A stretch of 64,000 bases of DNA, from IMG/VR virus record IMGVR_UViG_3300027708_000012, positions 1-64,000 of that record, one strand, 5' to 3'. The notes under the pieces were generated by a model that was not told where the DNA came from, made no database searches, and saw nothing but the letters and a program-made list of their open reading frames with translations. The translations under genes and the position numbers were made by a program. This document shows, piece after piece, positions 1-9,573 of this stretch (positions are counted from its first letter, which is position 1; every line of letters begins with the position of its first letter).

Positions 1-7
1 AGCACAA

Positions 8-172
8 ATGAAAACATTTTATTACAAGCAGACTGTAGAGCTTACGCTAGAGGTACAAGCGGAAACAGCTGAAGAGGCAGATGCTATTGCTAACGCAACT
101 GACATAACTGATGCGGGCGTTATAGCAACGGAATACGGCTGGGAAGAAGACGGCTACGCAGATGTTGACTAA
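8..172 (+). CDS. small acidic hypothetical protein (54 aa, MKTFYYKQ...YADVD)
   Basis: Manually translated ATG 8 to TAA 172; below the ORF-track cutoff; upstream context cut by the window edge. Confidence 0.6.
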   Translation: MKTFYYKQTVELTLEVQAETAEEADAIANATDITDAGVIATEYGWEEDGYADVD

Positions 173-184
173 AGTGTAGGGTTA

Positions 185-213
185 TTGACATTTTGGCTAG
201 CTTATTGTATAAT
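185..213 (+). promoter_or_regulatory. sigma70-type early promoter
   Basis: TTGACA(185-190)-N17-TATAAT(208-213), then SD AAGGAG. Confidence 0.9.
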
Positions 214-232
214 ACAATTTTAAGGAGCTAGT

Positions 233-463
233 ATGTGTACATGCATGCAATTGTCAAGTGCCACTCGTAATAAATTTACAGTACTGTACTGCTATCACCC
301 GCACCGACCGCCCGGTAACACGGAAGTTAGCATGCAGGAGTATGCTAGCATGACACTTGTAGCACACACCCCTATGGAAGCTATTGTCAACGCACAAAAA
401 TTGTGTTTTGTCAAGCACCCGGGCCTACAATGTGTAGTGTACAATGCTTTCGTAACGGAATAA
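233..463 (+). CDS. hypothetical early protein
   Basis: Own promoter and SD (TAAGGAGC) directly upstream. Confidence 0.6.
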   Translation: MCTCMQLSSATRNKFTVLYCYHPHRPPGNTEVSMQEYASMTLVAHTPMEAIVNAQKLCFVKHPGLQCVVYNAFVTE

Positions 464-496
464 CCCTACAGCCCGTAAGGGCTTATTACAGCGCAT

Positions 497-525
497 TTGA
501 CAGAGAGCTCAAAATGCGTTATAAT
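497..525 (+). promoter_or_regulatory. sigma70-type early promoter
   Basis: TTGACA(497-502)-N17-TATAAT(520-525). Confidence 0.9.
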
Positions 526-544
526 AAGTTTTTAAGGAGCTAGA

Positions 545-808
545 ATGTTAGAAGTTACACAGTTTGCAAACAACAGTTTTCATGCACAAAATTCGGATGT
601 ACGCAATTGCGAAGCTATTGTATTTGCCGAAAGCGTCCGTTCGGGTCGCACTATGTTGCAAGTTATTAATTATGTGCTAGAAGAAGACGATTCGGACACT
701 AACTTGTTGTGCGCTTGCGAAACACTGCAAGAAACTATTGTTAACGCATATAAAAAGCAAATTATCTCAGAATACTTAGACAATCTGTTGTACGAGAACA
801 ACAAATAA
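545..808 (+). CDS. hypothetical early protein
   Basis: Promoter plus SD TAAGGAGC; 87 aa. Confidence 0.75.
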   Translation: MLEVTQFANNSFHAQNSDVRNCEAIVFAESVRSGRTMLQVINYVLEEDDSDTNLLCACETLQETIVNAYKKQIISEYLDNLLYENNK

Positions 809-827
809 CCCTACAAGGTGTAGGGAC

Positions 828-856
828 TTGACGTCCCTACATTTTGGCGCTATAAT
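828..856 (+). promoter_or_regulatory. sigma70-type early promoter
   Basis: TTGACG(828-833)-N17-TATAAT(851-856). Confidence 0.85.
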
Positions 857-888
857 ACTAACATCAACACACAAAAGGAGCGACACTT

Positions 889-1089
889 ATGTATGATATC
901 GTAAAGAACCCAATCCCAAAGACCGGTCTGTTCGCAACACCAGAGTCATTTGAACAGTTGATGGAATACTGCCAACGGTTCAGTGGACAAGAGCGTATCA
1001 TCGCTATCACAGTGGCCACAATGGCCCTGAACTTGGCACACAATGTAGTTGAGAAAGAAATCCTGTCTAAAGAAATCTTTGCACAATAA
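889..1089 (+). CDS. hypothetical early protein
   Basis: SD AAGGAGCGA at 875-883; 66 aa. Confidence 0.8.
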   Translation: MYDIVKNPIPKTGLFATPESFEQLMEYCQRFSGQERIIAITVATMALNLAHNVVEKEILSKEIFAQ

Positions 1090-1098
1090 GGAGCACTT

Positions 1099-1356
1099 AT
1101 GCAAGTTAAAGAATTGATTGAGATGTTGCAGGGCCTGGACCCTGAGGCTCAAGTGCATTATGCCTACAACTATGGCGACCACTGGCGCACAGAGGTTGCC
1201 CCAAAGGTTGATAGGGTTGATGTGGGTGCAGTGGTCTACAGTGAGTACCATCGCATGGACAAGATGGTTGAGAACGAATACGACACAGAATTCGACGAGG
1301 AAACGGGTGAAGAGATTGTTGATGAAACCCTGCGTCGAGTAGTGGTATTGAGTTGA
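1099..1356 (+). CDS. hypothetical early protein
   Basis: SD AAGGAGC; acidic C-terminus; 85 aa. Confidence 0.8.
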   Translation: MQVKELIEMLQGLDPEAQVHYAYNYGDHWRTEVAPKVDRVDVGAVVYSEYHRMDKMVENEYDTEFDEETGEEIVDETLRRVVVLS

Positions 1357-1381
1357 CAGGTGCGCCGAAAGGCGCTATAAT
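1353..1381 (+). promoter_or_regulatory. sigma70-type early promoter with GC hairpin in spacer
   Basis: TTGACA(1353-1358, contains the upstream TGA stop)-N17-TATAAT(1376-1381); GCGCC-GAAA-GGCGC in the spacer. Confidence 0.9.
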
Positions 1382-1411
1382 TAAGACTTAAACAACACAT
1401 AGGAGCGAAAC

Positions 1412-1753
1412 ATGGGTTATTTTACAGATTGCGATTTCGACAGCACACACGAGATGCTGGACTGTATCAATGAAGTGATCGAGCGCAACATCCGCAACAA
1501 CTTCGTACAGCATCCCGCCTCGGACTTGGGACTGGACATCCGCTGTGGACGATTGCTAGTGGATGCGGCAGATGAGATCATTGCTGTGCCCAATCACAAC
1601 TTGCGTGGGCTTGACTACTACGGCGGGTTCGAGTACATTGAAGAAGGCGACGGGCGCCAAACAGTGGGCGACTACACTTTCTTTACCTGTGTGAACGAGC
1701 GGGTGCAAGACTGCTTTGATGCGTTGCGCTCTAGTGTAGCGGTTGACGAGTAA
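1412..1753 (+). CDS. hypothetical early protein
   Basis: SD AGGAGCGA; 113 aa. Confidence 0.8.
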   Translation: MGYFTDCDFDSTHEMLDCINEVIERNIRNNFVQHPASDLGLDIRCGRLLVDAADEIIAVPNHNLRGLDYYGGFEYIEEGDGRQTVGDYTFFTCVNERVQDCFDALRSSVAVDE

Positions 1754-1771
1754 GCGTTTTGGCTGTATAAT
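1743..1771 (+). promoter_or_regulatory. sigma70-type early promoter
   Basis: TTGACG(1743-1748)-N17-TATAAT(1766-1771); downstream TAAGACTTAAAC identical to the 1353 promoter. Confidence 0.85.
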
Positions 1772-1800
1772 TAAGACTTAAACACACACAGGAGCACACA

Positions 1801-2292
1801 ATGGGTACACGTTCAATGATTGCTATTCAAAACCCTTACAACAAAACAGTTCGCGCAGTCTACTGCCACTGGGACGGTTACTTGGAGCACAACGGCGCTA
1901 TCTTGCAGAAGCATTACGCAGAAAGCTCTAAAGTCAATCATTTGGTTGCTATGGGCGACTTGAGTAGCTTGGGCACACAGATTGGCGAAGCACATCCCTT
2001 CAGCCCGCACGGTAGCAAAGAAGACGAGGCTTTGTACGAACACGCTAAGGATCAGGGCTATTGCACTTTTTACAAGCGCGACAGAAGCGAGTCAGACGTT
2101 GACTTTAAAGTGTTCAACACTCTGAAGCAAGCTGAAGATCACTACACTTGGAGCGACTATTACTATGTCTTCAAGTACTCAAAAGCAGACGACTATCAGT
2201 CAGGCGAGTGGTTCTACAAAAAGGCGGGCGAGCGTTGGAAGAAGCTGGCTCCCGCTATTAAGAAACTTAACGCAGAGGAGTGCGCAGGATGA
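1801..2292 (+). CDS. conserved phage hypothetical protein (YCHWDGY motif family)
   Basis: MGTRS...VYCHWDGY N-terminus, a pattern I recognise from phage hypotheticals; SD AGGAGC. Confidence 0.85.
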   Translation: MGTRSMIAIQNPYNKTVRAVYCHWDGYLEHNGAILQKHYAESSKVNHLVAMGDLSSLGTQIGEAHPFSPHGSKEDEALYEHAKDQGYCTFYKRDRSESDVDFKVFNTLKQAEDHYTWSDYYYVFKYSKADDYQSGEWFYKKAGERWKKLAPAIKKLNAEECAG

Positions 2293-2579
2293 CCGGATTT
2301 CAAAGCAAACGGGCTATGGCCCTTGCCCGCCTTGAGGCTCTAAGGGAAAGCCCTAGCCTCAGCGTCAGGGACGAAATAGAGATCAGTCGCTTGGAAGAGG
2401 CTGTGGATCAACTGCCCGATCTGGTAGATCTAGTCATGGAGCAGATCCGCATAGACATTGAGAATGGTGATCTTACAGCAATAGAAGAACTGTTGGGTCA
2501 TGTGCCCGAAGACATCCTCAAAGGCTTTCTCTCAGAAGACACAGTAATGGATATCAACAACACCGGAGGTAAATGGTAA
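2289..2579 (+). CDS. hypothetical protein
   Basis: ATG at 2289 overlaps the upstream stop (ATGA) with SD GAGGAG; the track start at 2280 looks less likely. Confidence 0.75.
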   Translation: MTGFQSKRAMALARLEALRESPSLSVRDEIEISRLEEAVDQLPDLVDLVMEQIRIDIENGDLTAIEELLGHVPEDILKGFLSEDTVMDINNTGGKW

Positions 2580-2725
2580 TGAGTAAAGAACTTCAATCAA
2601 TTGTTAATGGATATAACGATCTTATTATCCGATGCGCAGAGTTGACTGACAAGACTCTCTTGGCAGAGGTATTAGCCTCTGTGGATGAAACTCAAGTTCA
2701 AATTTCAAAAGGACTACTACGATGA
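2579..2725 (+). CDS. small hypothetical protein (48 aa, MSKELQSIVNG...)
   Basis: Manual translation; TAATG and ATGA overlaps couple it to both neighbours. Confidence 0.65.
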   Translation: MSKELQSIVNGYNDLIIRCAELTDKTLLAEVLASVDETQVQISKGLLR

Positions 2726-2898
2726 GCAAGATGGCAGAACTTGATTGGGAAATTGAATACCGTGCCTGTGATGAGGGTATGAGTGCAGAGGACATTGCCA
2801 AAGACTTGAACTGTCCCATTGAGATTGTCAATGCTTGGTTCAAAGGTGCAGGTATTTGGGACGAGGAGCTCAGCCCTTACGCTACCAGCAACAGCTGA
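2722..2898 (+). CDS. small putative helix-turn-helix protein (58 aa)
   Basis: Manual translation MSKMAELDWEIEYRACDEGMSAEDIAKDLNCPIEIVNAW...; GMSAEDIAKDLNC matches an HTH pattern. Confidence 0.6.
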   Translation: MSKMAELDWEIEYRACDEGMSAEDIAKDLNCPIEIVNAWFKGAGIWDEELSPYATSNS

Positions 2899-2916
2899 TG
2901 TTGTAAAAATACAACA
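2899..2916. promoter_or_regulatory. operator-like palindrome TGTTG-N8-CAACA
   Basis: TGTTGTAAAAATACAACA, 9 nt upstream of the -35 at 2926. Confidence 0.6.
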
Positions 2917-2925
2917 CCTTTTGAG

Positions 2926-2954
2926 TTGACAATTTGGGCTCTCTGCGCTATAAT
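2926..2954 (+). promoter_or_regulatory. sigma70-type early promoter
   Basis: TTGACA(2926-2931)-N17-TATAAT(2949-2954). Confidence 0.9.
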
Positions 2955-2977
2955 AATGACATAGTAAGGAGAGCGCA

Positions 2978-3121
2978 ATGAAGATTGTAATAAAAATCAA
3001 ACCCAAGCATAGAGAGCATTATGTTCTCTTTGCCCAAAATACGCCCTTCAAGCAGAAGGTTGTAGAGAGCAAGATTAAATACAAACGTCAACCCAAACAC
3101 AAAGGAAAGCACAATGATTGA
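2978..3121 (+). CDS. small basic protein, ArfA (alternative ribosome-rescue factor)-like
   Basis: Manual translation MKIVIKIKPKHREHYVLFAQNTPFKQKVVESKIKYKRQPKHKGKHND; resembles the ArfA core (P-F-x-Q-x-V...Y-x-R-x-x-K-H); SD AAGGAG. Confidence 0.55.
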   Translation: MKIVIKIKPKHREHYVLFAQNTPFKQKVVESKIKYKRQPKHKGKHND

Positions 3122-3332
3122 GATCCTGGGATTCAACCCAAAGCAAATGGCCTTAGCAGACATCATGTGGGGCATCAATAGCAAGGAAGGTGTGGATGCC
3201 TTTATTCGAACCCTGCCCGCTGTAGAGCAACGCGAGTGCAAGACCATCATCCAAATGATGCTGTTGGCGTTCGCTGACGAGTGCAACGATACCCATGAAG
3301 CTGACATGGTTATTGACAAGTTCAGACTTTGA
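3114..3332 (+). CDS. hypothetical protein
   Basis: SD AAGGA; coupled to the upstream ORF. Confidence 0.75.
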   Translation: MIEILGFNPKQMALADIMWGINSKEGVDAFIRTLPAVEQRECKTIIQMMLLAFADECNDTHEADMVIDKFRL

Positions 3333-3341
3333 CAGTATAAT
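3313..3341 (+). promoter_or_regulatory. sigma70-type early promoter
   Basis: TTGACA(3313-3318)-N17-TATAAT(3336-3341), embedded in the 3' end of the upstream CDS. Confidence 0.85.
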
Positions 3342-3371
3342 ACATACATACAGACACACAAAGGAGTAAAG

Positions 3372-3638
3372 ATGAACATTAGCACACTAGAAGCCTATGT
3401 GGCACAGAAGAACCAGTGGACCCGCATTTTCAAAGGCAAGGAACTGAGCTTGTTGAACGCTAAGGATCGCCAGCGTATCGCTGACATGATTGATGCAGAC
3501 ATGAGCCCTGAGAACCTTACCTGCGATGGCGAATTGCCACGCGATGTAGTGCGTGACAAGGTGCGCCGTTTGAGCCGTTGTGCTGAGGAACTCCTCAGCA
3601 TTGATCCTTCAGTAACCTTTTACGAAATGGGAGTTTAA
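3372..3638 (+). CDS. hypothetical early protein
   Basis: SD AAGGAG; 88 aa. Confidence 0.8.
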   Translation: MNISTLEAYVAQKNQWTRIFKGKELSLLNAKDRQRIADMIDADMSPENLTCDGELPRDVVRDKVRRLSRCAEELLSIDPSVTFYEMGV

Positions 3639-3639
3639 C

Positions 3640-4287
3640 ATGCCTAATTGGTGCAACAACTATCTTGTCTTAGAACACGAAGACCCAGCAATGATCGAGC
3701 GGGCCAAGAAGGCCTTTGCTGATGGCAAACTGTTGAATGAGTTTTGCCCAGTGCCCGATGACTTGCACATTGTGGCAGGTCGTGTGGGTGATGACGAAGA
3801 TCAAAAGCAAAAGGATCTTGTAGCACAGGAAGAAGTCAATGTGGCCAAGCATGGCTACGCCAATTGGTATGACTACTGTGTGAATGAATGGGGCACCAAG
3901 TGGGATGTGGGCGGTGAGGGTGATCAAGCCAGCCAGGACAGTCCTACAGACTTACGCATGAACTTTGATAGTGCATGGGCTCCGCCTATTGCGGCTATGG
4001 AGAAGTTCCAGGACTTGGGCTTTAAGGTCAAGCTCATCTATTGGGAATCGGGTATGTGCTATTGTGGTCTGTTCGACGAGAATGGCGACGACTACATGGA
4101 CTATACAGATATGACAGCGGCACAAGTGGCTGAGTATATCAACCCTGAAGTTGACGAGTGCATGTGCATCGTTGAGAACTTGGAAGAGTGGGAAGAACAG
4201 AACTCGGAAGACGAGGAAAACATCGACATCGATCTTGATGGCGGTTTGAGTGCGGTAAACGAACAGGAACAACATGAAAACAAATAA
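3640..4287 (+). CDS. DUF1281/YubB ferredoxin-like domain family protein
   Basis: MPNWCNN start, WYDYC...WGTKWD and F-D-S-A-W-x-P-P motifs typical of this family. Confidence 0.7.
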   Translation: MPNWCNNYLVLEHEDPAMIERAKKAFADGKLLNEFCPVPDDLHIVAGRVGDDEDQKQKDLVAQEEVNVAKHGYANWYDYCVNEWGTKWDVGGEGDQASQDSPTDLRMNFDSAWAPPIAAMEKFQDLGFKVKLIYWESGMCYCGLFDENGDDYMDYTDMTAAQVAEYINPEVDECMCIVENLEEWEEQNSEDEENIDIDLDGGLSAVNEQEQHENK

Positions 4288-4405
4288 AGAAAAGAACCTA
4301 GAGCATGATGCTCGCGAGCAATCGCGTGTTCGTCCTGCACCAAAAGACTATGATTTCAAAGCTCTTGAGGCTGTCATCCGATCCTGGATAACAGAAAGCA
4401 AATGA
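4274..4405 (+). CDS. small hypothetical protein (43 aa)
   Basis: Manual translation MKTNKEKNLEHDAREQ...; SD CAGGA; ATGA overlap with the next gene. Confidence 0.55.
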   Translation: MKTNKEKNLEHDAREQSRVRPAPKDYDFKALEAVIRSWITESK

Positions 4406-4653
4406 GCCGATTAGCATTGTTTGGCAGGCCTTATGTAGTCTTTAATGCGAACAACAAGGAACACAGACGTTGGTTTGCAGACTTCAATAGAAAGCTGACA
4501 TGGGCAGACTGTCCAGTCCGTTTTGTAGTGGATGATGATCACGGCGATTTGGTTACAATGATCCAGCGTAACCTGATTCAATACTATGTGGACAAAGAGT
4601 TTGGCAAGTTAGAAAATCCAAAGATTCGTCCAAAACCAAAGAAAAATGGTTGA
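4402..4653 (+). CDS. hypothetical protein
   Basis: 83 aa; coupled start. Confidence 0.75.
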   Translation: MSRLALFGRPYVVFNANNKEHRRWFADFNRKLTWADCPVRFVVDDDHGDLVTMIQRNLIQYYVDKEFGKLENPKIRPKPKKNG

Positions 4654-4678
4654 CAACTAACCAAAATAGTTGTATAAT
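4650..4678 (+). promoter_or_regulatory. sigma70-type early promoter
   Basis: TTGACA(4650-4655, contains TGA stop)-N17-TATAAT(4673-4678); ACAACTA/TAGTTGT inverted repeat across the spacer. Confidence 0.9.
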
Positions 4679-4734
4679 TAGAACATGAACAAGGCGTTCA
4701 TACTTTTAAAACACACACAGAAGGAAACTTTAAA

Positions 4735-5085
4735 ATGGCTACAGATAAAACTTTTTCGGTTGCAGGTATTTCTAAATTGAACGGTTCTTACAAGATTCGT
4801 TTTGCCAATGACATCATGCGTATCAAGGTGCTCGCTAAGAGTGGCCATGAAGACATCCGCTTGGCTGATCTCGAGGGTGAGTTCTCCAAGATGGAAGCGG
4901 CTAAGATGCTCTTGACGCTTGAAGACTTTGCTGATGCTACAGCCCAGGCAACCATCACAGAGTACATTGAAGACAACACTCCTAAGACAGCCGCTCCTAA
5001 GGCTAAGACAGCTCCTGTGAAGGCAGTTGCTCCTAAGGCTCCTAAGGCTGTTAAGGTTGTTGAGAACGAGGATGCTCCTTTCTAA
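4735..5085 (+). CDS. hypothetical protein with Lys/Ala/Pro-rich C-terminal tail
   Basis: Globular N-terminus (F.VAGISK...RFAND..RIKVLAK.GH) plus PKTAAPKAKTAPVKAVAPKAPKA tail. Confidence 0.85.
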   Translation: MATDKTFSVAGISKLNGSYKIRFANDIMRIKVLAKSGHEDIRLADLEGEFSKMEAAKMLLTLEDFADATAQATITEYIEDNTPKTAAPKAKTAPVKAVAPKAPKAVKVVENEDAPF

Positions 5086-5099
5086 ACAATGGTATCAAA

Positions 5100-5282
5100 A
5101 TGAGCTTTATCCAGTTTGAAGTCTGGGGCCTATACGAGGGGCATGAAGAGCTCCTCGAGTGCGTCCCAACCCTTAAAGAAGCAGAGAAGGTTGCACAAGA
5201 CCTTCTTGAGTTTAACGAAGAGATTTGGATCCTAGAGGATACAGACGATGATCTGAGAGAAGTGCGAAGGTATACGAATTAG
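5100..5282 (+). CDS. small acidic hypothetical protein
   Basis: 60 aa; the last base of its stop codon is the first base of the tRNA. Confidence 0.65.
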   Translation: MSFIQFEVWGLYEGHEELLECVPTLKEAEKVAQDLLEFNEEIWILEDTDDDLREVRRYTN

Positions 5283-5358
5283 GGCCTATAGCTCAGTTGG
5301 TTAGAGCAGAGGACTCATAATCCTTTGGTCCCTGGTTCGAGTCCAGGTGGGCCCACCA
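5282..5358 (+). tRNA. tRNA-Ile2 (anticodon CAT, lysidine-type, reads AUA)
   Basis: Cloverleaf: acceptor GGGCCTA/TGGGCCC, D-arm GCTCAGTTGGTTAGAGC, anticodon arm GAGGA-CTCATAA-TCCTT, T-arm CCTGG-TTCGAGT-CCAGG, A73 plus encoded CCA; paired G1-C72 argues against fMet; overall similar to bacterial tRNA-Ile2. Confidence 0.9.
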
Positions 5359-5363
5359 CATAT

Positions 5364-5393
5364 GAAAGGTGTTGTAGAAATACAACACCTTTC
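5364..5393. promoter_or_regulatory. 13-bp perfect hairpin containing a second TGTTG-N8-CAACA palindrome
   Basis: GAAAGGTGTTGTA-GAAA-TACAACACCTTTC; core at 5370-5387 lies 9 nt upstream of the -35 at 5397. Confidence 0.65.
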
Positions 5394-5396
5394 GTC

Positions 5397-5425
5397 TTGA
5401 CTGACTCTAGGATCTCAGCTATAAT
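5397..5425 (+). promoter_or_regulatory. sigma70-type early promoter
   Basis: TTGACT(5397-5402)-N17-TATAAT(5420-5425). Confidence 0.8.
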
Positions 5426-5497
5426 CAAACTTCGAAGGCAACGGGATGGACGGCAAGGCTGGGCAACCCAATAAAGACCTTTCAGAAAGAAAGGTTG

Positions 5498-5526
5498 TTG
5501 ACAGTTTGGCAAATCCTTGCTATAAT
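5498..5526 (+). promoter_or_regulatory. sigma70-type early promoter (extended -10)
   Basis: TTGACA(5498-5503)-N17-TATAAT(5521-5526) with TG-n. Confidence 0.9.
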
Positions 5527-5556
5527 AGAGACATACAGACACACAAGGAGCATAAG

Positions 5557-5931
5557 ATGGAAGATTTCAAAAGCTGGGAAGAGATGTCCGTGCTAGAGCA
5601 ATATGCCTGCCAATACTGGGATATGTACAAGGATGCCTACGGCGTTCGCCCACGTGGTATTGATACCACCAACTGGACTGAAGCAGACTTTGAAGCTGAG
5701 TTCGTTCAGTTGGCTCGTGTTATCGATCAAGAGAACACTCTGCGTGAAGAGCGTGAAGCAATCGCCGCACACGAGTTCGAAATGCGTATGCAGGACTTGA
5801 TGCGTTCGGGTGCTAAGACTCGTGAGATGGCCATGCGCTGGGTTCACGAGGCAGAAGGTAGTGATGGCGACGACGAGTACCTTTGCTTCTTGTTGGGCTT
5901 GCCCTATCGTTATTTTAAGGAGATGGTATAA
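5557..5931 (+). CDS. hypothetical early protein
   Basis: Start reassigned to ATG 5557 (SD AAGGAGC, downstream of promoter 5498); the track ORF begins at 5446. Confidence 0.8.
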   Translation: MEDFKSWEEMSVLEQYACQYWDMYKDAYGVRPRGIDTTNWTEADFEAEFVQLARVIDQENTLREEREAIAAHEFEMRMQDLMRSGAKTREMAMRWVHEAEGSDGDDEYLCFLLGLPYRYFKEMV

Positions 5932-6182
5932 TGTTATTAGAAGATCAATTTTGCCGTATAGAGTACAAGGGTCAAGTCTACGATAGCCGCCATGGTGGAC
6001 CCTTTGATCGTGGCTCAGCAGACAGCTGGTATAGCCGTCCTTTCAACCCTCACTACTACGAGGGTGGCTCCTACGATTCAGAGCCCATTCAAGCCCAGGA
6101 CATGACTCCTGCAGAGATCGTGGCCTATGCCGCTGGATACGAGTACAATGAACAACATGGTGGCAAGAAAGATTGGGATTAA
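5931..6182 (+). CDS. conserved phage hypothetical protein (HGGPFDRGSADSWY motif)
   Basis: SD AAGGAG; TAATG coupling. Confidence 0.8.
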   Translation: MLLEDQFCRIEYKGQVYDSRHGGPFDRGSADSWYSRPFNPHYYEGGSYDSEPIQAQDMTPAEIVAYAAGYEYNEQHGGKKDWD

Positions 6183-6185
6183 CGG

Positions 6186-6214
6186 TTGACGCCCAGCCTA
6201 AAAGGCGTTATAAT
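6186..6214 (+). promoter_or_regulatory. sigma70-type early promoter
   Basis: TTGACG(6186-6191)-N17-TATAAT(6209-6214). Confidence 0.85.
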
Positions 6215-6245
6215 ACTTACATCAACAACGAACTTGGAGCGAAAC

Positions 6246-6947
6246 ATGTTCAAACTGCTTTCTACAGCGAATCCCAAAATCCAAAAGGGCACGAAGCTTG
6301 GCTATCTATCATTCATCCTACACCTTGCACCATCCACCCTTAGCGGGCGCAACACCTGCCCAAAGGCCACACCTGGTTGCATCGCATCATGTCTTAACAC
6401 CGCAGGCCGTGGCGGTATGTTCAAGCGCGGTGAGAACACCAACACTATTCAGCGAGCCCGCATCCGCAAGACGAATTATTTCTACGAACAGCGTCAGGAC
6501 TTCATGCTTGATTTGAAGAAGGACATTGAGAAGGGCATTAAGATGGCTACCAAGCTGGGCCTGACTCCTGTGTTTCGTCTTAACGGCACGAGCGATTTGA
6601 GCTGGGAGAAATACGATATGCTCCCTGGCTTGAATGTATTCGAGTGCTTCCCTACAGTACAGTTCTATGACTATACAAAGATCCTGGGTCGTAAGGTCAA
6701 AGGCATTGCCAACTACCACTTGACCTTCTCTAAGGCAGAGAACAACGACAGCGATGTGGCAGAAGCACTCTTGCAAGGCATGTCAGTGGTTGCTGTCTAC
6801 GACAAGATCCCAGAGGGTGTTCCATCCGCTGACGAGACAGACTTGCGCTTCTTAGACCCTAAGGGCACAATGCTTGGATTGAAGGCTAAGGGTCGTGCAA
6901 AAAAAGACTATTCAGGCTTCGTAATTCGGTTGACTGAAGTGGCTTAA
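6246..6947 (+). CDS. Cys-cluster protein, GP88-like phage family
   Basis: Start reassigned to ATG 6246 (SD GGAGCGA); LHLAP...CPKATPGCIASCLNTAGRG, FRLNGTSD, FYDYTK, DETDLRFLD motifs. Confidence 0.7.
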   Translation: MFKLLSTANPKIQKGTKLGYLSFILHLAPSTLSGRNTCPKATPGCIASCLNTAGRGGMFKRGENTNTIQRARIRKTNYFYEQRQDFMLDLKKDIEKGIKMATKLGLTPVFRLNGTSDLSWEKYDMLPGLNVFECFPTVQFYDYTKILGRKVKGIANYHLTFSKAENNDSDVAEALLQGMSVVAVYDKIPEGVPSADETDLRFLDPKGTMLGLKAKGRAKKDYSGFVIRLTEVA

Positions 6948-6958
6948 GACGTTATAAT
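6930..6958 (+). promoter_or_regulatory. sigma70-type early promoter
   Basis: TTGACT(6930-6935)-N17-TATAAT(6953-6958), inside the upstream CDS end. Confidence 0.85.
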
Positions 6959-6991
6959 TACAACATCAACAGCAAATAAGGAGCGAAACTT

Positions 6992-7177
6992 ATGTCAGAT
7001 AAACTATATGCATTCTGCGACGCAGTCGTAGCATTCGTAGGATTTTTCCTAGTGTACGGAGTGTCAGGTACAATTGACACAGCCCCAGACAGCCAACTCT
7101 TGCCATTGTGCGGTATTGCACTCTGCGGATTGGCCCTGTTCTTTGCAGGCGTTAACGGCTTGACAACCCGCCGCTAA
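6992..7177 (+). CDS. small membrane protein (2 predicted TM segments)
   Basis: Two hydrophobic stretches; SD AAGGAGCGA. Confidence 0.75.
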   Translation: MSDKLYAFCDAVVAFVGFFLVYGVSGTIDTAPDSQLLPLCGIALCGLALFFAGVNGLTTRR

Positions 7178-7188
7178 GACAGTATAAT
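7160..7188 (+). promoter_or_regulatory. sigma70-type early promoter
   Basis: TTGACA(7160-7165)-N17-TATAAT(7183-7188). Confidence 0.9.
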
Positions 7189-7220
7189 TACTACTTCAAC
7201 AACACAATAGGAGCGACACT

Positions 7221-7541
7221 ATGGTAACAGCAAATCAGATTCAAGCAGGTTTTGTGCTAGCCCACTTGGCAGGCGTTGAGATGTATCAAAAGATTGGCGA
7301 GCGTGATGCATGCGGTTTTGGTTGGGTGGATGTGTACGTGGACCGTACCAACAGCAAGCAGGCCAAAGAGCTGATTGCAGCTGGCTTCCGCAAGGACTAC
7401 AAACCCAAGTGCTTGAGCTATTGGGATCCAGCAAAGATTCCAACTCAGTCAGTATCAGTCAAAGAAGCTGGCGCAGAGGCTCTGGCCACTTACTTGCAAA
7501 GCCTGGGCTTGAAGGCTTATGCAGGCTCGAGATTAGACTAA
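7221..7541 (+). CDS. conserved phage hypothetical protein (CGFGWV motif)
   Basis: SD AGGAGCGA; 106 aa. Confidence 0.8.
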   Translation: MVTANQIQAGFVLAHLAGVEMYQKIGERDACGFGWVDVYVDRTNSKQAKELIAAGFRKDYKPKCLSYWDPAKIPTQSVSVKEAGAEALATYLQSLGLKAYAGSRLD

Positions 7542-7550
7542 CCAAAAGAC

Positions 7551-7579
7551 ATGACAGGATGGCAACATCCTGTTATAAT
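7551..7579 (+). promoter_or_regulatory. sigma70-type promoter with spacer palindrome
   Basis: ATGACA(7551-7556)-N17-TATAAT(7574-7579) with TG-n; ACAGGATG-GCAA-CATCCTGT spans the spacer. Confidence 0.8.
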
Positions 7580-7609
7580 GTAAATATTAATTAACCAAAG
7601 GAGCGACGA

Positions 7610-8491
7610 ATGGCGAAAGTAGTTACATCAAAGATGCTGATGGCCCTGCAATCTGAAGTCACAACCAAGAGCTTGGAAGTGGAGTCAGTCAAGAAAGATT
7701 TGAGTAAAGAGACAGACGCTGAGATCATGGATCGTATGCGTGATCGTTTTGAGATCCTCGATGACATGACCCGTGCGGTTAAGAGCGGCAAAGTCCGTGC
7801 TATGATTGTCACAGGCCCTCCAGGTGTTGGCAAGAGCTTTGGTGTAGAGAAAGTACTGTCAAAGCATGATGTCTTCGCTGACGTGGCTAACGATCAGAAG
7901 CTGAAGAAGTATGAAGTGGTCAAGGGCGCAATGAGCGCATTGGGCTTGTACAGTAAGCTCTACCACTACAAGGATGCTAAGAACATTCTAGTGTTTGATG
8001 ACTGTGACTCAGTACTGTTAGATGACTTGAGCTTGAACATTCTCAAAGCGGCACTGGACACATCCAGTAAGCGTATGATCCATTGGAACACTGACTCACA
8101 TCTATTGCGTCGTGAAGGCGTGCCAGATAGCTTTGAGTTCAAAGGTGGTGCTATCTTCATTACCAACATCAAGTTTGATCACGTTAAGAGCAAGAAGCTG
8201 CGTGACCACTTGGAAGCCCTGGAGAGCCGTTGCCACTACTTGGATCTCACTATTGATACTGAGCGCGAGAAGCTCTTGCGTATTGAGCAAGTGGTAGCTG
8301 AGTGCGGCATGTTGGACAAGTATGAGTTTGAAGACTACCAGAAGATGGAAGTGGTAGACTTTGTTAAGGCCAATGTGCCACGCCTACGTGAGCTGAGCCT
8401 GCGTACAGTCCTTAAGGTAGCAGACTTGAAGCACGGCTTCCCGGACAAGTGGAAGGCAGTAGCAGAGGTAACGTGTATGCGCAACAGGTAA
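7610..8491 (+). CDS. AAA+ ATPase
   Basis: Walker A GPPGVGKS, Walker B ILVFDD, sensor FITN, Arg finger SRC. Confidence 0.9.
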   Translation: MAKVVTSKMLMALQSEVTTKSLEVESVKKDLSKETDAEIMDRMRDRFEILDDMTRAVKSGKVRAMIVTGPPGVGKSFGVEKVLSKHDVFADVANDQKLKKYEVVKGAMSALGLYSKLYHYKDAKNILVFDDCDSVLLDDLSLNILKAALDTSSKRMIHWNTDSHLLRREGVPDSFEFKGGAIFITNIKFDHVKSKKLRDHLEALESRCHYLDLTIDTEREKLLRIEQVVAECGMLDKYEFEDYQKMEVVDFVKANVPRLRELSLRTVLKVADLKHGFPDKWKAVAEVTCMRNR

Positions 8492-8661
8492 GCTGTGCGC
8501 CACAGTACAGTAAGCAGCAGCATAGCTGTAGGCTGTACAGGACATGCCCAACGATTCGCTCCCGGCAAGTGTGTCCATGAAAAGGTCTTGTAAGCCCGAA
8601 TCGCTCCCGGCAAGACCTTTTGTATCCCCAGACTGATTAAATTCTTTCTGGGGATTTTTTT
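8492..8661 (+). ncRNA. candidate structured sRNA with two anti-Shine-Dalgarno loops (UCGCUCC)
   Basis: Hairpins 8492-8506, 8505-8538, 8540-8576 and 8580-8621; 18-nt direct repeat CGAWTCGCTCCCGGCAAG (8552-8569, 8597-8614) held in unrelated outer stems; terminator follows. Confidence 0.55.
8624..8661 (+). terminator. intrinsic terminator closing the early region
   Basis: ATCCCCAGA(8624-8632)...TCTGGGGAT(8647-8655) followed by a T-run. Confidence 0.8.
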
Positions 8662-8737
8662 CTTTTTGATATCGGTGGGGGACATATAAAATAATCATCG
8701 AGAGGGTGGGGGCACCCAGGCATGAATTTTATAAAAC

Positions 8738-8755
8738 TGTTGCTATAGCGCAACA
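8738..8755. promoter_or_regulatory. third TGTTG-N8-CAACA palindrome
   Basis: TGTTG-CTATAGCG-CAACA; no consensus promoter at the 9-nt spacing here. Confidence 0.4.
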
Positions 8756-8868
8756 GCGCATGGGTACCGAAGTATTTTCACCCCTCTTTTTCTACAAGTA
8801 CTTCTTTATATTTTTTTTCGAGCAAGAAATTCTTGAGACGCAGGACCCTTTCGGGTAAATAATAGTAT

Positions 8869-9573
8869 ATGAAAACCTGTACCAAATGTTGCCAATCCAA
8901 GCCCTTTGATGCGTTCTACGTTAAAGGCACCAATCCCCGCACTGGGCATACTCAATACCTTAGCCAATGCAGAGCGTGTACACTTGCTGCTTATGTGCCA
9001 AAAACACCCAAACCCAAACCTCCACCCCGTACTGAAAAAACTTGCCGTGTGTGTGCTGCCACTAAAAATCTGTCTGAATTCTACAATCACACGTTGACTT
9101 GTAGAGCATGTATCAGCGATAAGAATCGTGCCAATCGTGTGTGTAAACCCACACCTCCATTAAAGAACACACCAAGAGCCATGTACATGCGTGAACGTCG
9201 CCGTTCTAACCCTTTGGCCAAGTTGCGTGCCAATGTAGGTACACTTATAGCCAATGTATTAAGTAATCAAGGATATAAGAAAACTACAAAATCTGCCAGT
9301 ATACTAGGATGTTCTTTTGATGAGTTCTCTGCTCATATTGAAAGTCAGTTCTTGCACGGTATGTCATGGTCCAACCGTGCGCTTTGGCACATTGATCACA
9401 TAGTACCTGTTAAGCTAGCCCGTAACGAACCGGAACTGTTATTGCTCAATCACTACTCTAATCTTCGTCCATTATGGAAAGAACTCAATCAAACCAAAGC
9501 TAGCACACTAACACAAGACAGCTTGAATCATCCGCTATATAAACAAATCTTGGAAAACAGAATCTCAGGTTGA
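8869..9573 (+). CDS. HNH endonuclease with N-terminal CxxC zinc-finger repeats
   Basis: Four CxxC pairs; WHIDHIVP...NHYSNLRPLW...N..K motif. Confidence 0.85.
   Translation: MKTCTKCCQSKPFDAFYVKGTNPRTGHTQYLSQCRACTLAAYVPKTPKPKPPPRTEKTCRVCAATKNLSEFYNHTLTCRACISDKNRANRVCKPTPPLKNTPRAMYMRERRRSNPLAKLRANVGTLIANVLSNQGYKKTTKSASILGCSFDEFSAHIESQFLHGMSWSNRALWHIDHIVPVKLARNEPELLLLNHYSNLRPLWKELNQTKASTLTQDSLNHPLYKQILENRISG

Follow-up and report, generated by a model that had tools for sequence, protein, structure and literature searches.

An uncultured freshwater jumbo phage gives many of its first-expressed genes an unusual ribosome-binding site (RBS), GGAGCGA, whose extra letters match the loops of conserved RNA hairpins at the end of the same gene cluster rather than the ribosome. 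The phage therefore probably tunes or shuts off early-gene translation by RNA-RNA pairing. We analyzed a 64,000-nucleotide window (positions 1 to 64,000 of IMG/VR virus record IMGVR_UViG_3300027708_000012), the whole 345-kb genome, and 80 related metagenomic phage contigs. A prior sequence-only reading had reported that GGAGCGA precedes the ATG of six promoter-proximal early genes by 3 to 5 nt, and this observation was confirmed. All six sites were exact, with spacers to the ATG of 5, 3, 3, 5, 4, and 3 nt. Each site lies 20 to 26 nt downstream of a sigma70-like promoter that matches TTGACA-17-TATAAT at 11 to 12 of 12 positions. The features of the cluster, all on the + strand, are as follows, with predicted duplex energies given for the hairpin loop versus the 16S tail.

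224 to 5553: weaker GGAGC-type early RBSs, namely GGAGCTA at 224 and 536, GGAGCAC at 1090 and 1791, and GGAGCAT at 5547; predicted 5-bp duplex with the loop, -8.7 to -9.1 kcal/mol
877 to 883: GGAGCGA RBS of gene 889-1089 (promoter 828-856); -12.3 versus -8.1 kcal/mol
1402 to 1408: GGAGCGA(A) RBS of gene 1412-1753 (promoter 1353-1381); 8-bp duplex, -13.3 versus -6.5 kcal/mol
6236 to 6242: GGAGCGA(A) RBS of gene 6246-6947, a GP88-family protein (promoter 6186-6214); -13.1 versus -5.6 kcal/mol
6980 to 6986: GGAGCGA(A) RBS of gene 6992-7177 (promoter 6930-6958); -13.3 versus -7.4 kcal/mol
7210 to 7216: GGAGCGA RBS of gene 7221-7541 (promoter 7160-7188); -12.3 versus -6.5 kcal/mol
7600 to 7606: GGAGCGA RBS of the ATPase gene (promoter 7551-7579)
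7610 to 8491: nrdC.10-like AAA ATPase gene, the last gene of the early cluster, whose 3'UTR carries the hairpins; no promoter-like site of 11/12 or better lies between 7579 and the hairpins
8505 to 8538: first 3'UTR hairpin, without the motif
8540 to 8576: hairpin 1, with an 8-bp outer stem, a 4x4 internal loop, CG/CG closing pairs, and the 9-nt loop AUUCGCUCC at 8554-8562
8580 to 8621: hairpin 2, with an 11- to 12-bp outer stem, CCG/CGG closing pairs, and the 9-nt loop AAUCGCUCC at 8599-8607
8624 to 8662: intrinsic terminator (stem 8624-8656 plus T-run) that ends the early transcript

The motif was enriched in the window and concentrated in the early cluster. The window holds 11 copies on both strands, against 2.5 +/- 1.4 expected, and none of 100 shuffles reached 11. 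Three further + strand copies, overlooked by the sequence-only reading, are not RBSs: 2150 (inside gene 1801-2292), 17546, and 39046. As had been claimed, the only + strand complements (TCGCTCC) in the window are at 8556 and 8601, five leaders are C/A-rich (and G-poor) while the 7600 leader is A/T-rich, and other early genes carry GGAGC-type variants. The whole genome contains 23 copies. Outside the early cluster, where genes use AAGGAG-A, only 4 of 93 GGAG-type RBSs and 1 of 31 sigma70-like promoters carry the motif.

We then asked whether the motif is conserved. In the 80 relatives, 414 of 958 GGAG-type RBSs are GGAGCGA. These comprise 322 of 524 promoter-proximal RBSs and 92 of 434 internal ones, compared to only 31 of 1560 non-RBS GGAGNNN. 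Among the 524 promoter-proximal RBSs, position 5 is C in 94% and G in 0%, while the flanking leader positions vary (446 distinct contexts). The orthologous ATPase RBS is GGAGCGA in 63 of 78 relatives and GGAGCG in 71 of 78.

The interpretation offered by the sequence-only reading was supported by these comparative data. It had inferred that 16S pairing does not explain CGA, that a second constraint exists, and that the loops at 8556 and 8601 are the candidate partner. It had also set out two outcomes that would count against it, and neither was observed. The first was loss of CGA in relatives that retain the hairpins; instead, motif and hairpins were conserved together. The second was that GGAGCGA is simply the complement of the host 16S 3' end. 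We found that the bases beyond GGAG do not fit the host 16S tail (GGAGGUGAUC): CGA mismatches it, and no 16S gene in 185,579 species genomes carries TCGCTCC there, although many metagenome-assembled genomes lack 16S genes. The same pattern with CCTCC, used as a positive control, recovered the canonical GGATCACCTCC in Methylophilaceae and Polaromonas, the lineages nearest to the phage's bS21. The host is probably a proteobacterium, with Betaproteobacteria the likely lineage. Predicted duplex energies at the six sites were -12.3 to -13.3 kcal/mol for the loop against -5.6 to -8.1 for the 16S tail, with a genome-wide mean of -4.2 for other genes. The suggestion that RBS variants set graded sensitivity is so far only a gradient of predicted duplex energy.

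The hairpins themselves were strongly conserved. All 80 relatives keep at least one such hairpin, with an invariant loop and covarying stems. Every relative has TCGCTCC within 260 nt after the ATPase stop, and 78 of 80 carry two or more copies within 100 nt of each other, although in one relative (L059) the pair lies elsewhere in the locus. We identified 139 distinct units with 118 distinct outer-stem sequences, of which 113 units have an outer stem of 6 bp or more. The closing pairs covary (CCG/CGG, GUG/CAC, and CUG/CAG). For hairpin 1, in 27 same-register relatives, all 8 outer-stem pairs show changes on both sides; a formal count on 27 sequences gave a covariation score of 0.709 versus 0.217 in shuffles, with 0 of 500 shuffles reaching it and slid controls at most 0.12. 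The minimum free energy fold of the window pairs part of loop 2, whereas the comparative structure leaves it open. T-runs follow the stems on the + strand only, and in most relatives the motif-bearing hairpin 2 is itself followed by the T-run. In addition, pairs 3 to 8 of the outer helix include G-U cells and no unpaired cells. The same loop recurs in other 3'UTR contexts, always on the same strand as GGAGCGA RBSs (0.27 to 0.42 per kb, against 0.009 to 0.027 on the opposite strand).

Covariation between loop and RBS across related phages had also been proposed as a check, and one lineage changed both together, a compensatory switch. The divergent contig 3300006105_000147 has five hairpins with UUGCUCC, two of them directly after its ATPase gene, and its RBSs are GGAGCAA (10), GGAGCAT (5), and GGAGCGA (0). 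This joint switch rests on one contig, and another contig (L390) has UUGCUCC loops with mostly GGAGCGA RBSs, which needs a G-U wobble. Three relatives (L004, L007, and L008) keep the hairpins although their ATPase RBS is AAGGAAC. In contrast, a sister clade that lacks the 3'UTR hairpins, and whose ATPase gene abuts the next gene, has no dominant extension, with GGAGCGA in only 12 to 15% of RBSs. On the ATPase tree the hairpin trait changes only once, so this presence/absence association is a single contrast (1 independent pair). Furthermore, the GGAGC core is also kept in that clade, meaning that the C at position 5 is not fully explained.

Taken together, we consider it somewhat more likely than not that the early genes use a composite RBS. 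In this view, (A)GGAG binds the canonical 16S tail of the host, while GGAGCGA(A) is the exact complement of a 9-nt loop (AUUCGCUCC) shown two or three times on hairpins in the 3'UTR and terminator of the last early transcript, the ATPase mRNA. Acting as part of the full mRNA or as a stable 3' fragment, the hairpin RNA would pair through its loops with 7 to 8 nt of the Shine-Dalgarno (SD) sequence of early mRNAs, including its own, and block 30S binding. As the RNA accumulates, translation of the early set would be turned down, while late genes (AAGGAG-A) and host genes would not be touched, because the CGA(A) extension supplies the specificity. Variants such as GGAGCA/T pair over only 5 nt and would be less sensitive. 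Our analysis directly demonstrates the motif, its restriction to early RBSs, its conservation, its lack of fit to 16S, the conserved hairpins with invariant loops and covarying stems, and one joint loop/RBS switch. Pairing in vivo, repression rather than activation, action in trans, processing, and timing are inferences; neither pairing nor translational block was assayed. Because the hairpins are made at the same time as their targets, delayed shut-off requires differential stability, which is not shown. The early region is present in four lake metatranscriptomes, but these data are assembled contigs rather than reads, which cannot show RNA ends or rule out DNA carry-over, and one run has a contig running through the terminator. 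A terminator hairpin plus U-tail, as in Hfq-dependent 3'UTR-derived sRNAs, is present at the 3' end.

Among the alternatives, it is possible, though unlikely, that GGAGCGA is the target of a protein encoded by phage or host, such as a RegB-like endoribonuclease or a RegA-like repressor, with the hairpins being unrelated terminators or antagonists of that protein's access. T4 sets the precedent, because strong RegB/S1 sites share GG*AGRAYARAA, an extended SD specific to early mRNAs (PMC3014915), and the persistence of the GGAGC core in the clade without 3'UTR hairpins would fit. The early RBSs studied here do share an intergenic GGAG with RegB targets, but they lack the RAYARAA flank, given the C at position 5. 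We found no RegB (PF10715) or RegA family match in the genome; however, the searches also gave no signal in control genomes, so this absence counts for little and leaves the presence of a regB gene undecided. A protein would not explain why the exact complement is held invariant in hairpin loops of all 80 relatives, nor why loop and RBS changed together.

A slightly less likely alternative is that the same pairing serves an opposite or local purpose, either autoregulating the ATPase mRNA in cis through a 5'-3' contact or protecting or stabilizing early mRNAs against nucleases, rather than shutting off the whole early set in trans. Consistent with this, the ATPase gene that carries the hairpins has the best-conserved GGAGCGA, it is the only early gene with GGAGCGA in one relative (L069), and hairpins and targets are transcribed simultaneously. 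However, GGAGCGA is the majority RBS of many unrelated early genes, the same loop recurs behind other genes whose own RBS is AGGAAA, and L004, L007, and L008 keep the hairpins without the ATPase motif.

It is improbable that the 7-mer is a double-stranded DNA operator for a phage DNA-binding protein. Such a site reads the same in either orientation, so the joint change to GGAGCAA/TTGCTCC would fit, and the sites lie at about +25 to +32 of the promoters, with the inverted form at the end of the cluster. Yet the complement is always at the apex of a hairpin with covarying stems, which matters only for a single strand. In addition, the motif occurs at internal RBSs with no promoter nearby and is strictly in sense orientation at RBSs. 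Functionless hitchhiking of CGA in a duplicated promoter-leader-RBS cassette is very unlikely: leaders resemble one another (about 25 nt), and in some relatives whole cassettes are near-identical, but orthologous ATPase leaders diverge freely while the motif stays, and the complementary loops would be unexplained. An unusual host 16S tail had no evidence in its favor and is refuted as far as genome collections allow.

The element also differs from its closest relatives in function. In T4 RegB/S1, an extended SD likewise marks early genes for selective inactivation after the early period, and the regulator's own mRNA carries the motif (PMC3014915), but the reader is a protein nuclease helped by S1 and the extension is purine/A-rich. 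Here the only conserved partner found is an RNA loop. The c4 antisense RNA of phages P1/P7, a phage-encoded structured RNA, presents complementary sequences in loops, blocks an RBS, is transcribed together with its target, and differs in specificity between related phages through matched changes (PMC12197685; Citron and Schuster 1990). Loops carrying the complement of the target RBS were found here, as were matched changes in the one lineage. However, c4 controls one operon (icd-ant) for immunity, lies upstream of its target, and is processed out, whereas here the loops are in a 3'UTR/terminator and match the RBSs of many early genes. The element did not belong to c4 or any other Rfam family: only the tRNA passed the gathering score, and at E up to 10 the region 8440-8720 gave only chance-level hits far below the cut-offs. 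We found no description of it.

The C-rich-loop sRNAs of Firmicutes (RNAIII and RsaE/RoxS, with UCCC loops) also show the same anti-SD-like loop on several hairpins and pair with the SDs of a set of mRNAs (cf. PMC3861533). Those loops pair with generic G-rich SDs of host mRNAs, while here an added UUCG/CGAA part makes the match specific to the phage's own early genes. The 3'UTR-derived sRNAs of Gram-negative bacteria (CpxQ, SroC, and DapZ) share the terminator of an mRNA and could be released by processing, but their seed is usually a single-stranded stretch 5' of the terminator rather than its apical loop; neither a processed, stable 3' fragment nor Hfq binding was examined here. A CsrB/RsmZ-type protein sponge does not fit, because GGAGCGA would be in the loops only on the - strand, the T-runs and G-U pairs show that the + strand is the RNA, and there is no strong - strand promoter nearby.

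Selective shut-off of phage early genes is known from T4, where proteins do it: RegB cuts early SDs and RegA represses. An RNA that does the same job by recognizing a private extension of the SD would be a new solution to the same problem, and a natural counterpart of the synthetic orthogonal SD/anti-SD pairs of orthogonal ribosomes, in which the GGAG core is kept and neighboring bases are changed to create a private pairing code. More tentatively, a large clade of uncultured freshwater jumbo phages could run such an orthogonal SD code, in which a small hairpin RNA imitating the 16S tail competes with ribosomes for exactly these mRNAs. This would be an RNA-only, reprogrammable timer for the early-to-middle switch, with different lineages using different code words (UCGCUCC/GGAGCGA and UUGCUCC/GGAGCAA). 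The phage has no 16S gene. The anti-SD look-alike sits on a small hairpin, so it would compete with the ribosome rather than translate. The element is short, modular, and conserved in hundreds of metagenomic contigs, and it therefore defines a new candidate RNA family, not present in Rfam 15, whose targets can be predicted for phages that cannot be cultured. The loop/RBS pair could serve as a compact orthogonal translational switch, and GGAGC(GA) after TTGACA-17-TATAAT marks early genes in this phage group. Finally, the loop with its 5' neighbor, GAU-UCG-CUCC, differs from the 16S tail GAU-CAC-CUCC only in the central triplet.

The virus record is a single contig of 345,369 bp, of which the window is the first 64 kb, and it is 94% complete by CheckV. 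A near-identity search of positions 1-9000 against 50,697 phage records returned only tRNA-Met matches, so that no cultured relative exists in that collection. The closest named ATPase, from Pseudomonas phage PA5oct (45% identity), was not informative because there the gene is followed directly by other genes, with no hairpins. In contrast, IMG/VR holds hundreds of related contigs, and the RNA runs that contain this region are labelled lake water or freshwater metagenomes. Positions 1-8662 form a + strand cluster of small genes driven by 14 promoters that match TTGACA-17-TATAAT at 11-12 of 12 positions, all located between 185 and 7579. The cluster ends with an nrdC.10-like AAA ATPase gene at 7610-8491. 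GC content is 46-47% in the first 10 kb and 42-44% in the last 20 kb of the record, compared to 38% for the genome and 32-35% in some regions.

To characterize the distribution of GGAGCGA, we counted its occurrences in the window and in the whole genome. The motif occurs 11 times in the window against 2.5 expected, and none of 100 shuffles reached 11. The observation made in the sequence-only reading held. The six copies that it cited (877, 1402, 6236, 6980, 7210, and 7600) lie 3-5 nt before an ATG, and each follows one of the strong promoters by 20-26 nt. Three more + strand copies (2150, 17546, and 39046) are not RBSs, and the two - strand copies, which read TCGCTCC on the + strand, are at 8556 and 8601. 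The whole genome has 23 copies. Using genes called with a simple codon-usage script, we found that the RBS consensus outside the early cluster is AAGGAG-A-(A/T), with A at position 5 in 56%. Only 4 of 93 GGAG-type RBSs there are GGAGCGA, and only 1 of 31 sigma70-like promoters on the - strand elsewhere in the genome is followed by it. The motif is therefore a property of this early cluster. Literature searches, made in a library that is not complete, found no description of it.

Using the ATPase as anchor, we fetched 80 related loci with 72-100% amino-acid identity and classified their GGAG-type RBSs, defined by an ATG 8-14 nt after the first G and an ORF of at least 40 codons. Of 958 distinct RBSs, 414 are exactly GGAGCGA. 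The motif is carried by 322 of 524 promoter-proximal RBSs and by 92 of 434 RBSs without a nearby -10 box, but by only 31 of 1560 non-RBS GGAGNNN. In promoter-proximal RBSs, position 5 is C in 94% and G in 0%, position 6 is G in 72%, and position 7 is A in 70%. The 446 distinct contexts share an A at -1 (86%), an A at +8 (70%), and a G-poor, A/C-rich leader, but otherwise vary. The ATPase gene's own RBS is GGAGCGA in 63 of 78 relatives, although its leader diverges freely. Three relatives (L004, L007, and L008) keep the hairpins with an AAGGAAC ATPase RBS, for which we have no explanation. Overall, this pattern indicates selection on the 7-8-mer itself, not hitch-hiking in a duplicated cassette. 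One gene of the early cluster, 4735-5085, is an exception. It has a long leader (4650-4734) with a hairpin (about 4681-4705) and an AGGAAA RBS, and relatives keep a similar long structured leader and a non-GGAGC RBS for the orthologous gene (about 117 aa).

We asked whether GGAGCGA simply mirrors an unusual host 16S tail, an outcome that had been set out in advance as one that would overturn the reading. To identify the likely host lineage, we examined a ribosomal protein bS21 encoded by the phage outside the window (303984-304139 of the virus genome, - strand; L201:1456-1686; Pfam 64 bits). This protein resembles proteobacterial bS21 (58-64 bits to the best solved-structure chains; 6v39 is the Acinetobacter baumannii ribosome and 7unr the Pseudomonas aeruginosa one) far more than the chain of 7jil, the Flavobacterium johnsoniae ribosome (35 bits; 7JIL is named in PMC9723584). 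Its nearest cellular relatives are Betaproteobacteria (Methylophilaceae, Burkholderiales; 58-64% identity), suggesting a betaproteobacterial host. A 4.5-kb contig of a Crocinitomicaceae MAG (JBDNIA010000378.1) encodes a bS21 that is 90% identical to the phage's, but it is probably a phage contig binned into a bacterial MAG and should not be used for host assignment. We also considered the published bS21 phages of Bacteroidetes (PMC9723584) as the home clade and rejected them, because they have 31-34% GC and because of the bS21 similarities (64 versus 35 bits). As bS21 sits beside the anti-SD, a link to RBS choice is conceivable but was not examined. The pattern AAGTCGTAACAAGGTA-N20-32-CCTCC finds the canonical GGATCACCTCC tail in three Methylophilaceae genomes and one Polaromonas genome, whereas the same pattern ending in TCGCTCC finds nothing in 185,579 species genomes. 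The predicted duplex of the six RBSs with the 16S tail is only -5.6 to -8.1 kcal/mol. Pairing of the loop with 16S helix 24 (GGAGCAAAC in Proteobacteria) was not pursued, since it is a mismatch for the likely host and lies in a paired region. The interpretation in the sequence-only reading, that something other than 16S pairing constrains the CGA, was supported.

The 178 nt after the ATPase stop fold far better than shuffles (-63.8 kcal/mol, z = -4.9) and form the following elements:

8505-8538 (+), a first hairpin, free of the motif
8540-8576 (+), motif-bearing hairpin 1
8580-8621 (+), motif-bearing hairpin 2
8624-8662 (+), a terminator

No strong promoter lies between 7579 and the hairpins, so they belong to the ATPase transcript. 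Every one of the 80 relatives has TCGCTCC within 260 nt after the ATPase stop, and 78 carry two or three copies within 100 nt of each other, although in one of these (L059) that pair lies elsewhere in the locus. The common design consists of a 9-nt loop, AUUCGCUCC (135 of 164 units have AU before UCGCUCC), a 3-bp closing stem that covaries (CCG/CGG, GUG/CAC, CUG/CAG, UCG/CGA), an asymmetric internal loop, and an outer stem. The outer stem has 6 bp or more in 113 of 139 distinct units, with 118 different 5' stem sequences. The region was tested for membership by homology in any Rfam family and matches none.

We then asked whether the stems covary. Alignment of 55 terminal hairpins with MAFFT followed by RNAalifold recovered only the 3-bp closing stem, because the outer stems differ in length. 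We therefore analyzed the stems by register and made a formal count on 27 hairpin-1 sequences of one register class. All 8 outer pairs show changes on both sides, and the covariation score is 0.709, against 0.217 in shuffles (0 of 500 reach it) and at most 0.12 when the partners are slid. This class was chosen by its ability to pair, which biases the percentage of cells paired but not the variety of pairs. In most relatives the last motif-bearing hairpin is directly followed by a T-run on the + strand, and pairs 3-8 of the outer helix contain G-U cells and no unpaired cells. Both points identify the + strand as the RNA.

Loop 5'-AUUCGCUCC-3' pairs with 5'-GGAGCGAA-3', giving 8 bp at 1402, 6236, and 6980 and 7 bp at 877, 7210, and 7600, with predicted energies of -12.3 to -13.3 kcal/mol. 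The GGAGCA/T variants give about -8.8, while internal early genes average -4.7 and the other 358 genes average -4.2. A gradient of predicted sensitivity therefore exists, as the sequence-only reading had suggested. The A at -1 is explained by 16S pairing (AGGAG) and the A at +8 by the loop's second U, so that the RBS looks like a composite of two overlapping constraints.

To test for co-variation across lineages, we looked for loop variants. Among the fetched loci none was found within true hairpins, apart from AAUCGCUCC and ACUCGCUCC, and the loop is invariant within the first 80 relatives. We then scanned the whole of IMG/VR for two single-base loop variants, which gave 73 and 21 hits. Nearly all were chance, which sets the chance level for such 15-mers, and only one hit (locus L355) was a real hairpin. 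That hit, contig 3300006105_000147, is a true relative. It has five hairpins whose loops carry UUGCUCC, of which three lie in one intergenic cluster and two lie directly after its ATPase gene. Its sigma70-type early genes use GGAGCAA (10), GGAGCAT (5), and GGAGCAC, GGAGCAG, and GGAGCTA (one each), with no GGAGCGA. A loop change of C to U is thus matched by an RBS change of G to A. However, another locus, L390, combines UUGCUCC loops with GGAGCGA RBSs, which would need a G-U wobble.

The relatives of that contig's ATPase form a large sister clade (loci L409-L487), in which the next gene abuts the ATPase gene and no 3'UTR hairpins exist. There GGAGC is still the rule, which we have not explained, but no extension dominates (GGAGCGA 12-15%, CAC 25%, CAG 20%, CAA 18%). 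We asked whether this clade uses another GCUCC-loop hairpin, but no recurrent alternative was found; two loci simply carry the TCGCTCC hairpin elsewhere. These contrasts need care. On the ATPase tree the TCGCTCC-hairpin trait changes once, so the presence/absence contrast is one event (50/56 against 3/33 loci with high GGAGCGA use), and with only one independent pair no statistics are possible. The joint switch is a second event.

The exact 15-mer CCGATTCGCTCCCGG gave at least 120 hits in IMG/VR, part of which are chance, with 34 of 119 having no same-strand GGAGCGA RBS. The rest fall into recurrent contexts, in which the same AUUCGCUCC hairpin occurs in other phage contigs behind other genes (loci L083, L100, L111, L147, L154, and others, as well as L106, L122, and L149). 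One such context is the 3'UTR of a conserved protein of about 90 aa (starting MKFINKDTKTFKVFNALYNG...) whose own RBS is AGGAAA, followed by a conserved terminator. A further context follows ...GTTACTGCCTAA. RBS-type GGAGCGA lies on the same strand at 0.27-0.42 per kb, against 0.009-0.027 per kb on the opposite strand.

Four lake-water metatranscriptome runs hold contigs identical to parts of 4.5-8.5 kb. In three of them nothing lies beyond 8625, while the fourth has a contig spanning 8540-9427. Only contigs were examined, and because these cannot show RNA ends or exclude DNA carry-over, they show only that the region appears in RNA libraries. Some of the contigs have joints that skip 57-113 nt between the ATPase stop and hairpin 1 (8481-8548), which indicates co-occurring strains that lack the first, motif-free hairpin.

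The best-supported model is a 3'UTR/terminator-borne anti-RBS RNA whose loops pair with an extended SD that marks the phage's early genes, including the gene that carries it. The most likely effect is repression of translation as the RNA accumulates, although the model does not say how an RNA made together with its targets would give delayed shut-off. In this view, the CGA(A) extension provides specificity that a plain CCUCC loop could not. The loop with its 5' neighbour reads GAU-UCG-CUCC, against GAU-CAC-CUCC in the 16S tail, and thus resembles an anti-SD with a swapped central triplet. This may be coincidence, since CUCC is needed to pair with GGAG. The closest known systems in function are the P1/P7 c4 antisense RNA (PMC12197685) and the C-rich-loop sRNAs of Firmicutes.

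Despite this support, other explanations are possible. The strongest is that a RegB-like or RegA-like protein reads the extended SD, for which T4 is the precedent, with the consensus GG*AGRAYARAA (PMC3014915). RegB and RegA family searches of the genome found nothing, but the controls were also silent, so the searches do not speak to whether such genes are absent. Next is the same pairing used in cis or for protection. A dsDNA operator is not excluded by the co-variation alone, but it fits poorly with the apical-loop placement, the covarying stems, and the motif's use at internal RBSs. Cassette hitch-hiking is disfavoured, and 16S complementarity is refuted as far as genome collections allow.

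Other elements were found in and around the early cluster. A tRNA-Met (CAT) at 5282-5358 is followed by a terminator hairpin of the type GGTGTTGTAGAAATACAACACC (5366-5395), which recurs at 2899-2922 and, nearly unchanged, in many related contigs. A strong promoter (TTGACT-17-TATAAT, 5397-5425) is followed by about 70 nt with a hairpin (5477-5495) and then by the next promoter (5498-5526). This could be a short non-coding transcript or an alternative longer 5' end for gene 5557-5931. Directly after the early terminator, at 8666-8760, lies a G-rich box followed by an A/T-rich stretch (GGTGGGGGACATATAAA at 8674, with a second GGTGGGGG box nearby). It occurs only once in this genome, but relatives keep a similar box at the same place (GGGGTCGGGGCATATA-like), and it may mark the start of the next transcription class. 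Genome-wide, TAAATACTA occurs 13 times (e.g., 283739 on the + strand and 293585, 306614, and 328681 on the - strand), and several copies lie 15-30 nt upstream of an RBS of non-early genes. It is reminiscent of the T4 late promoter TATAAATA and could be a middle or late promoter element.
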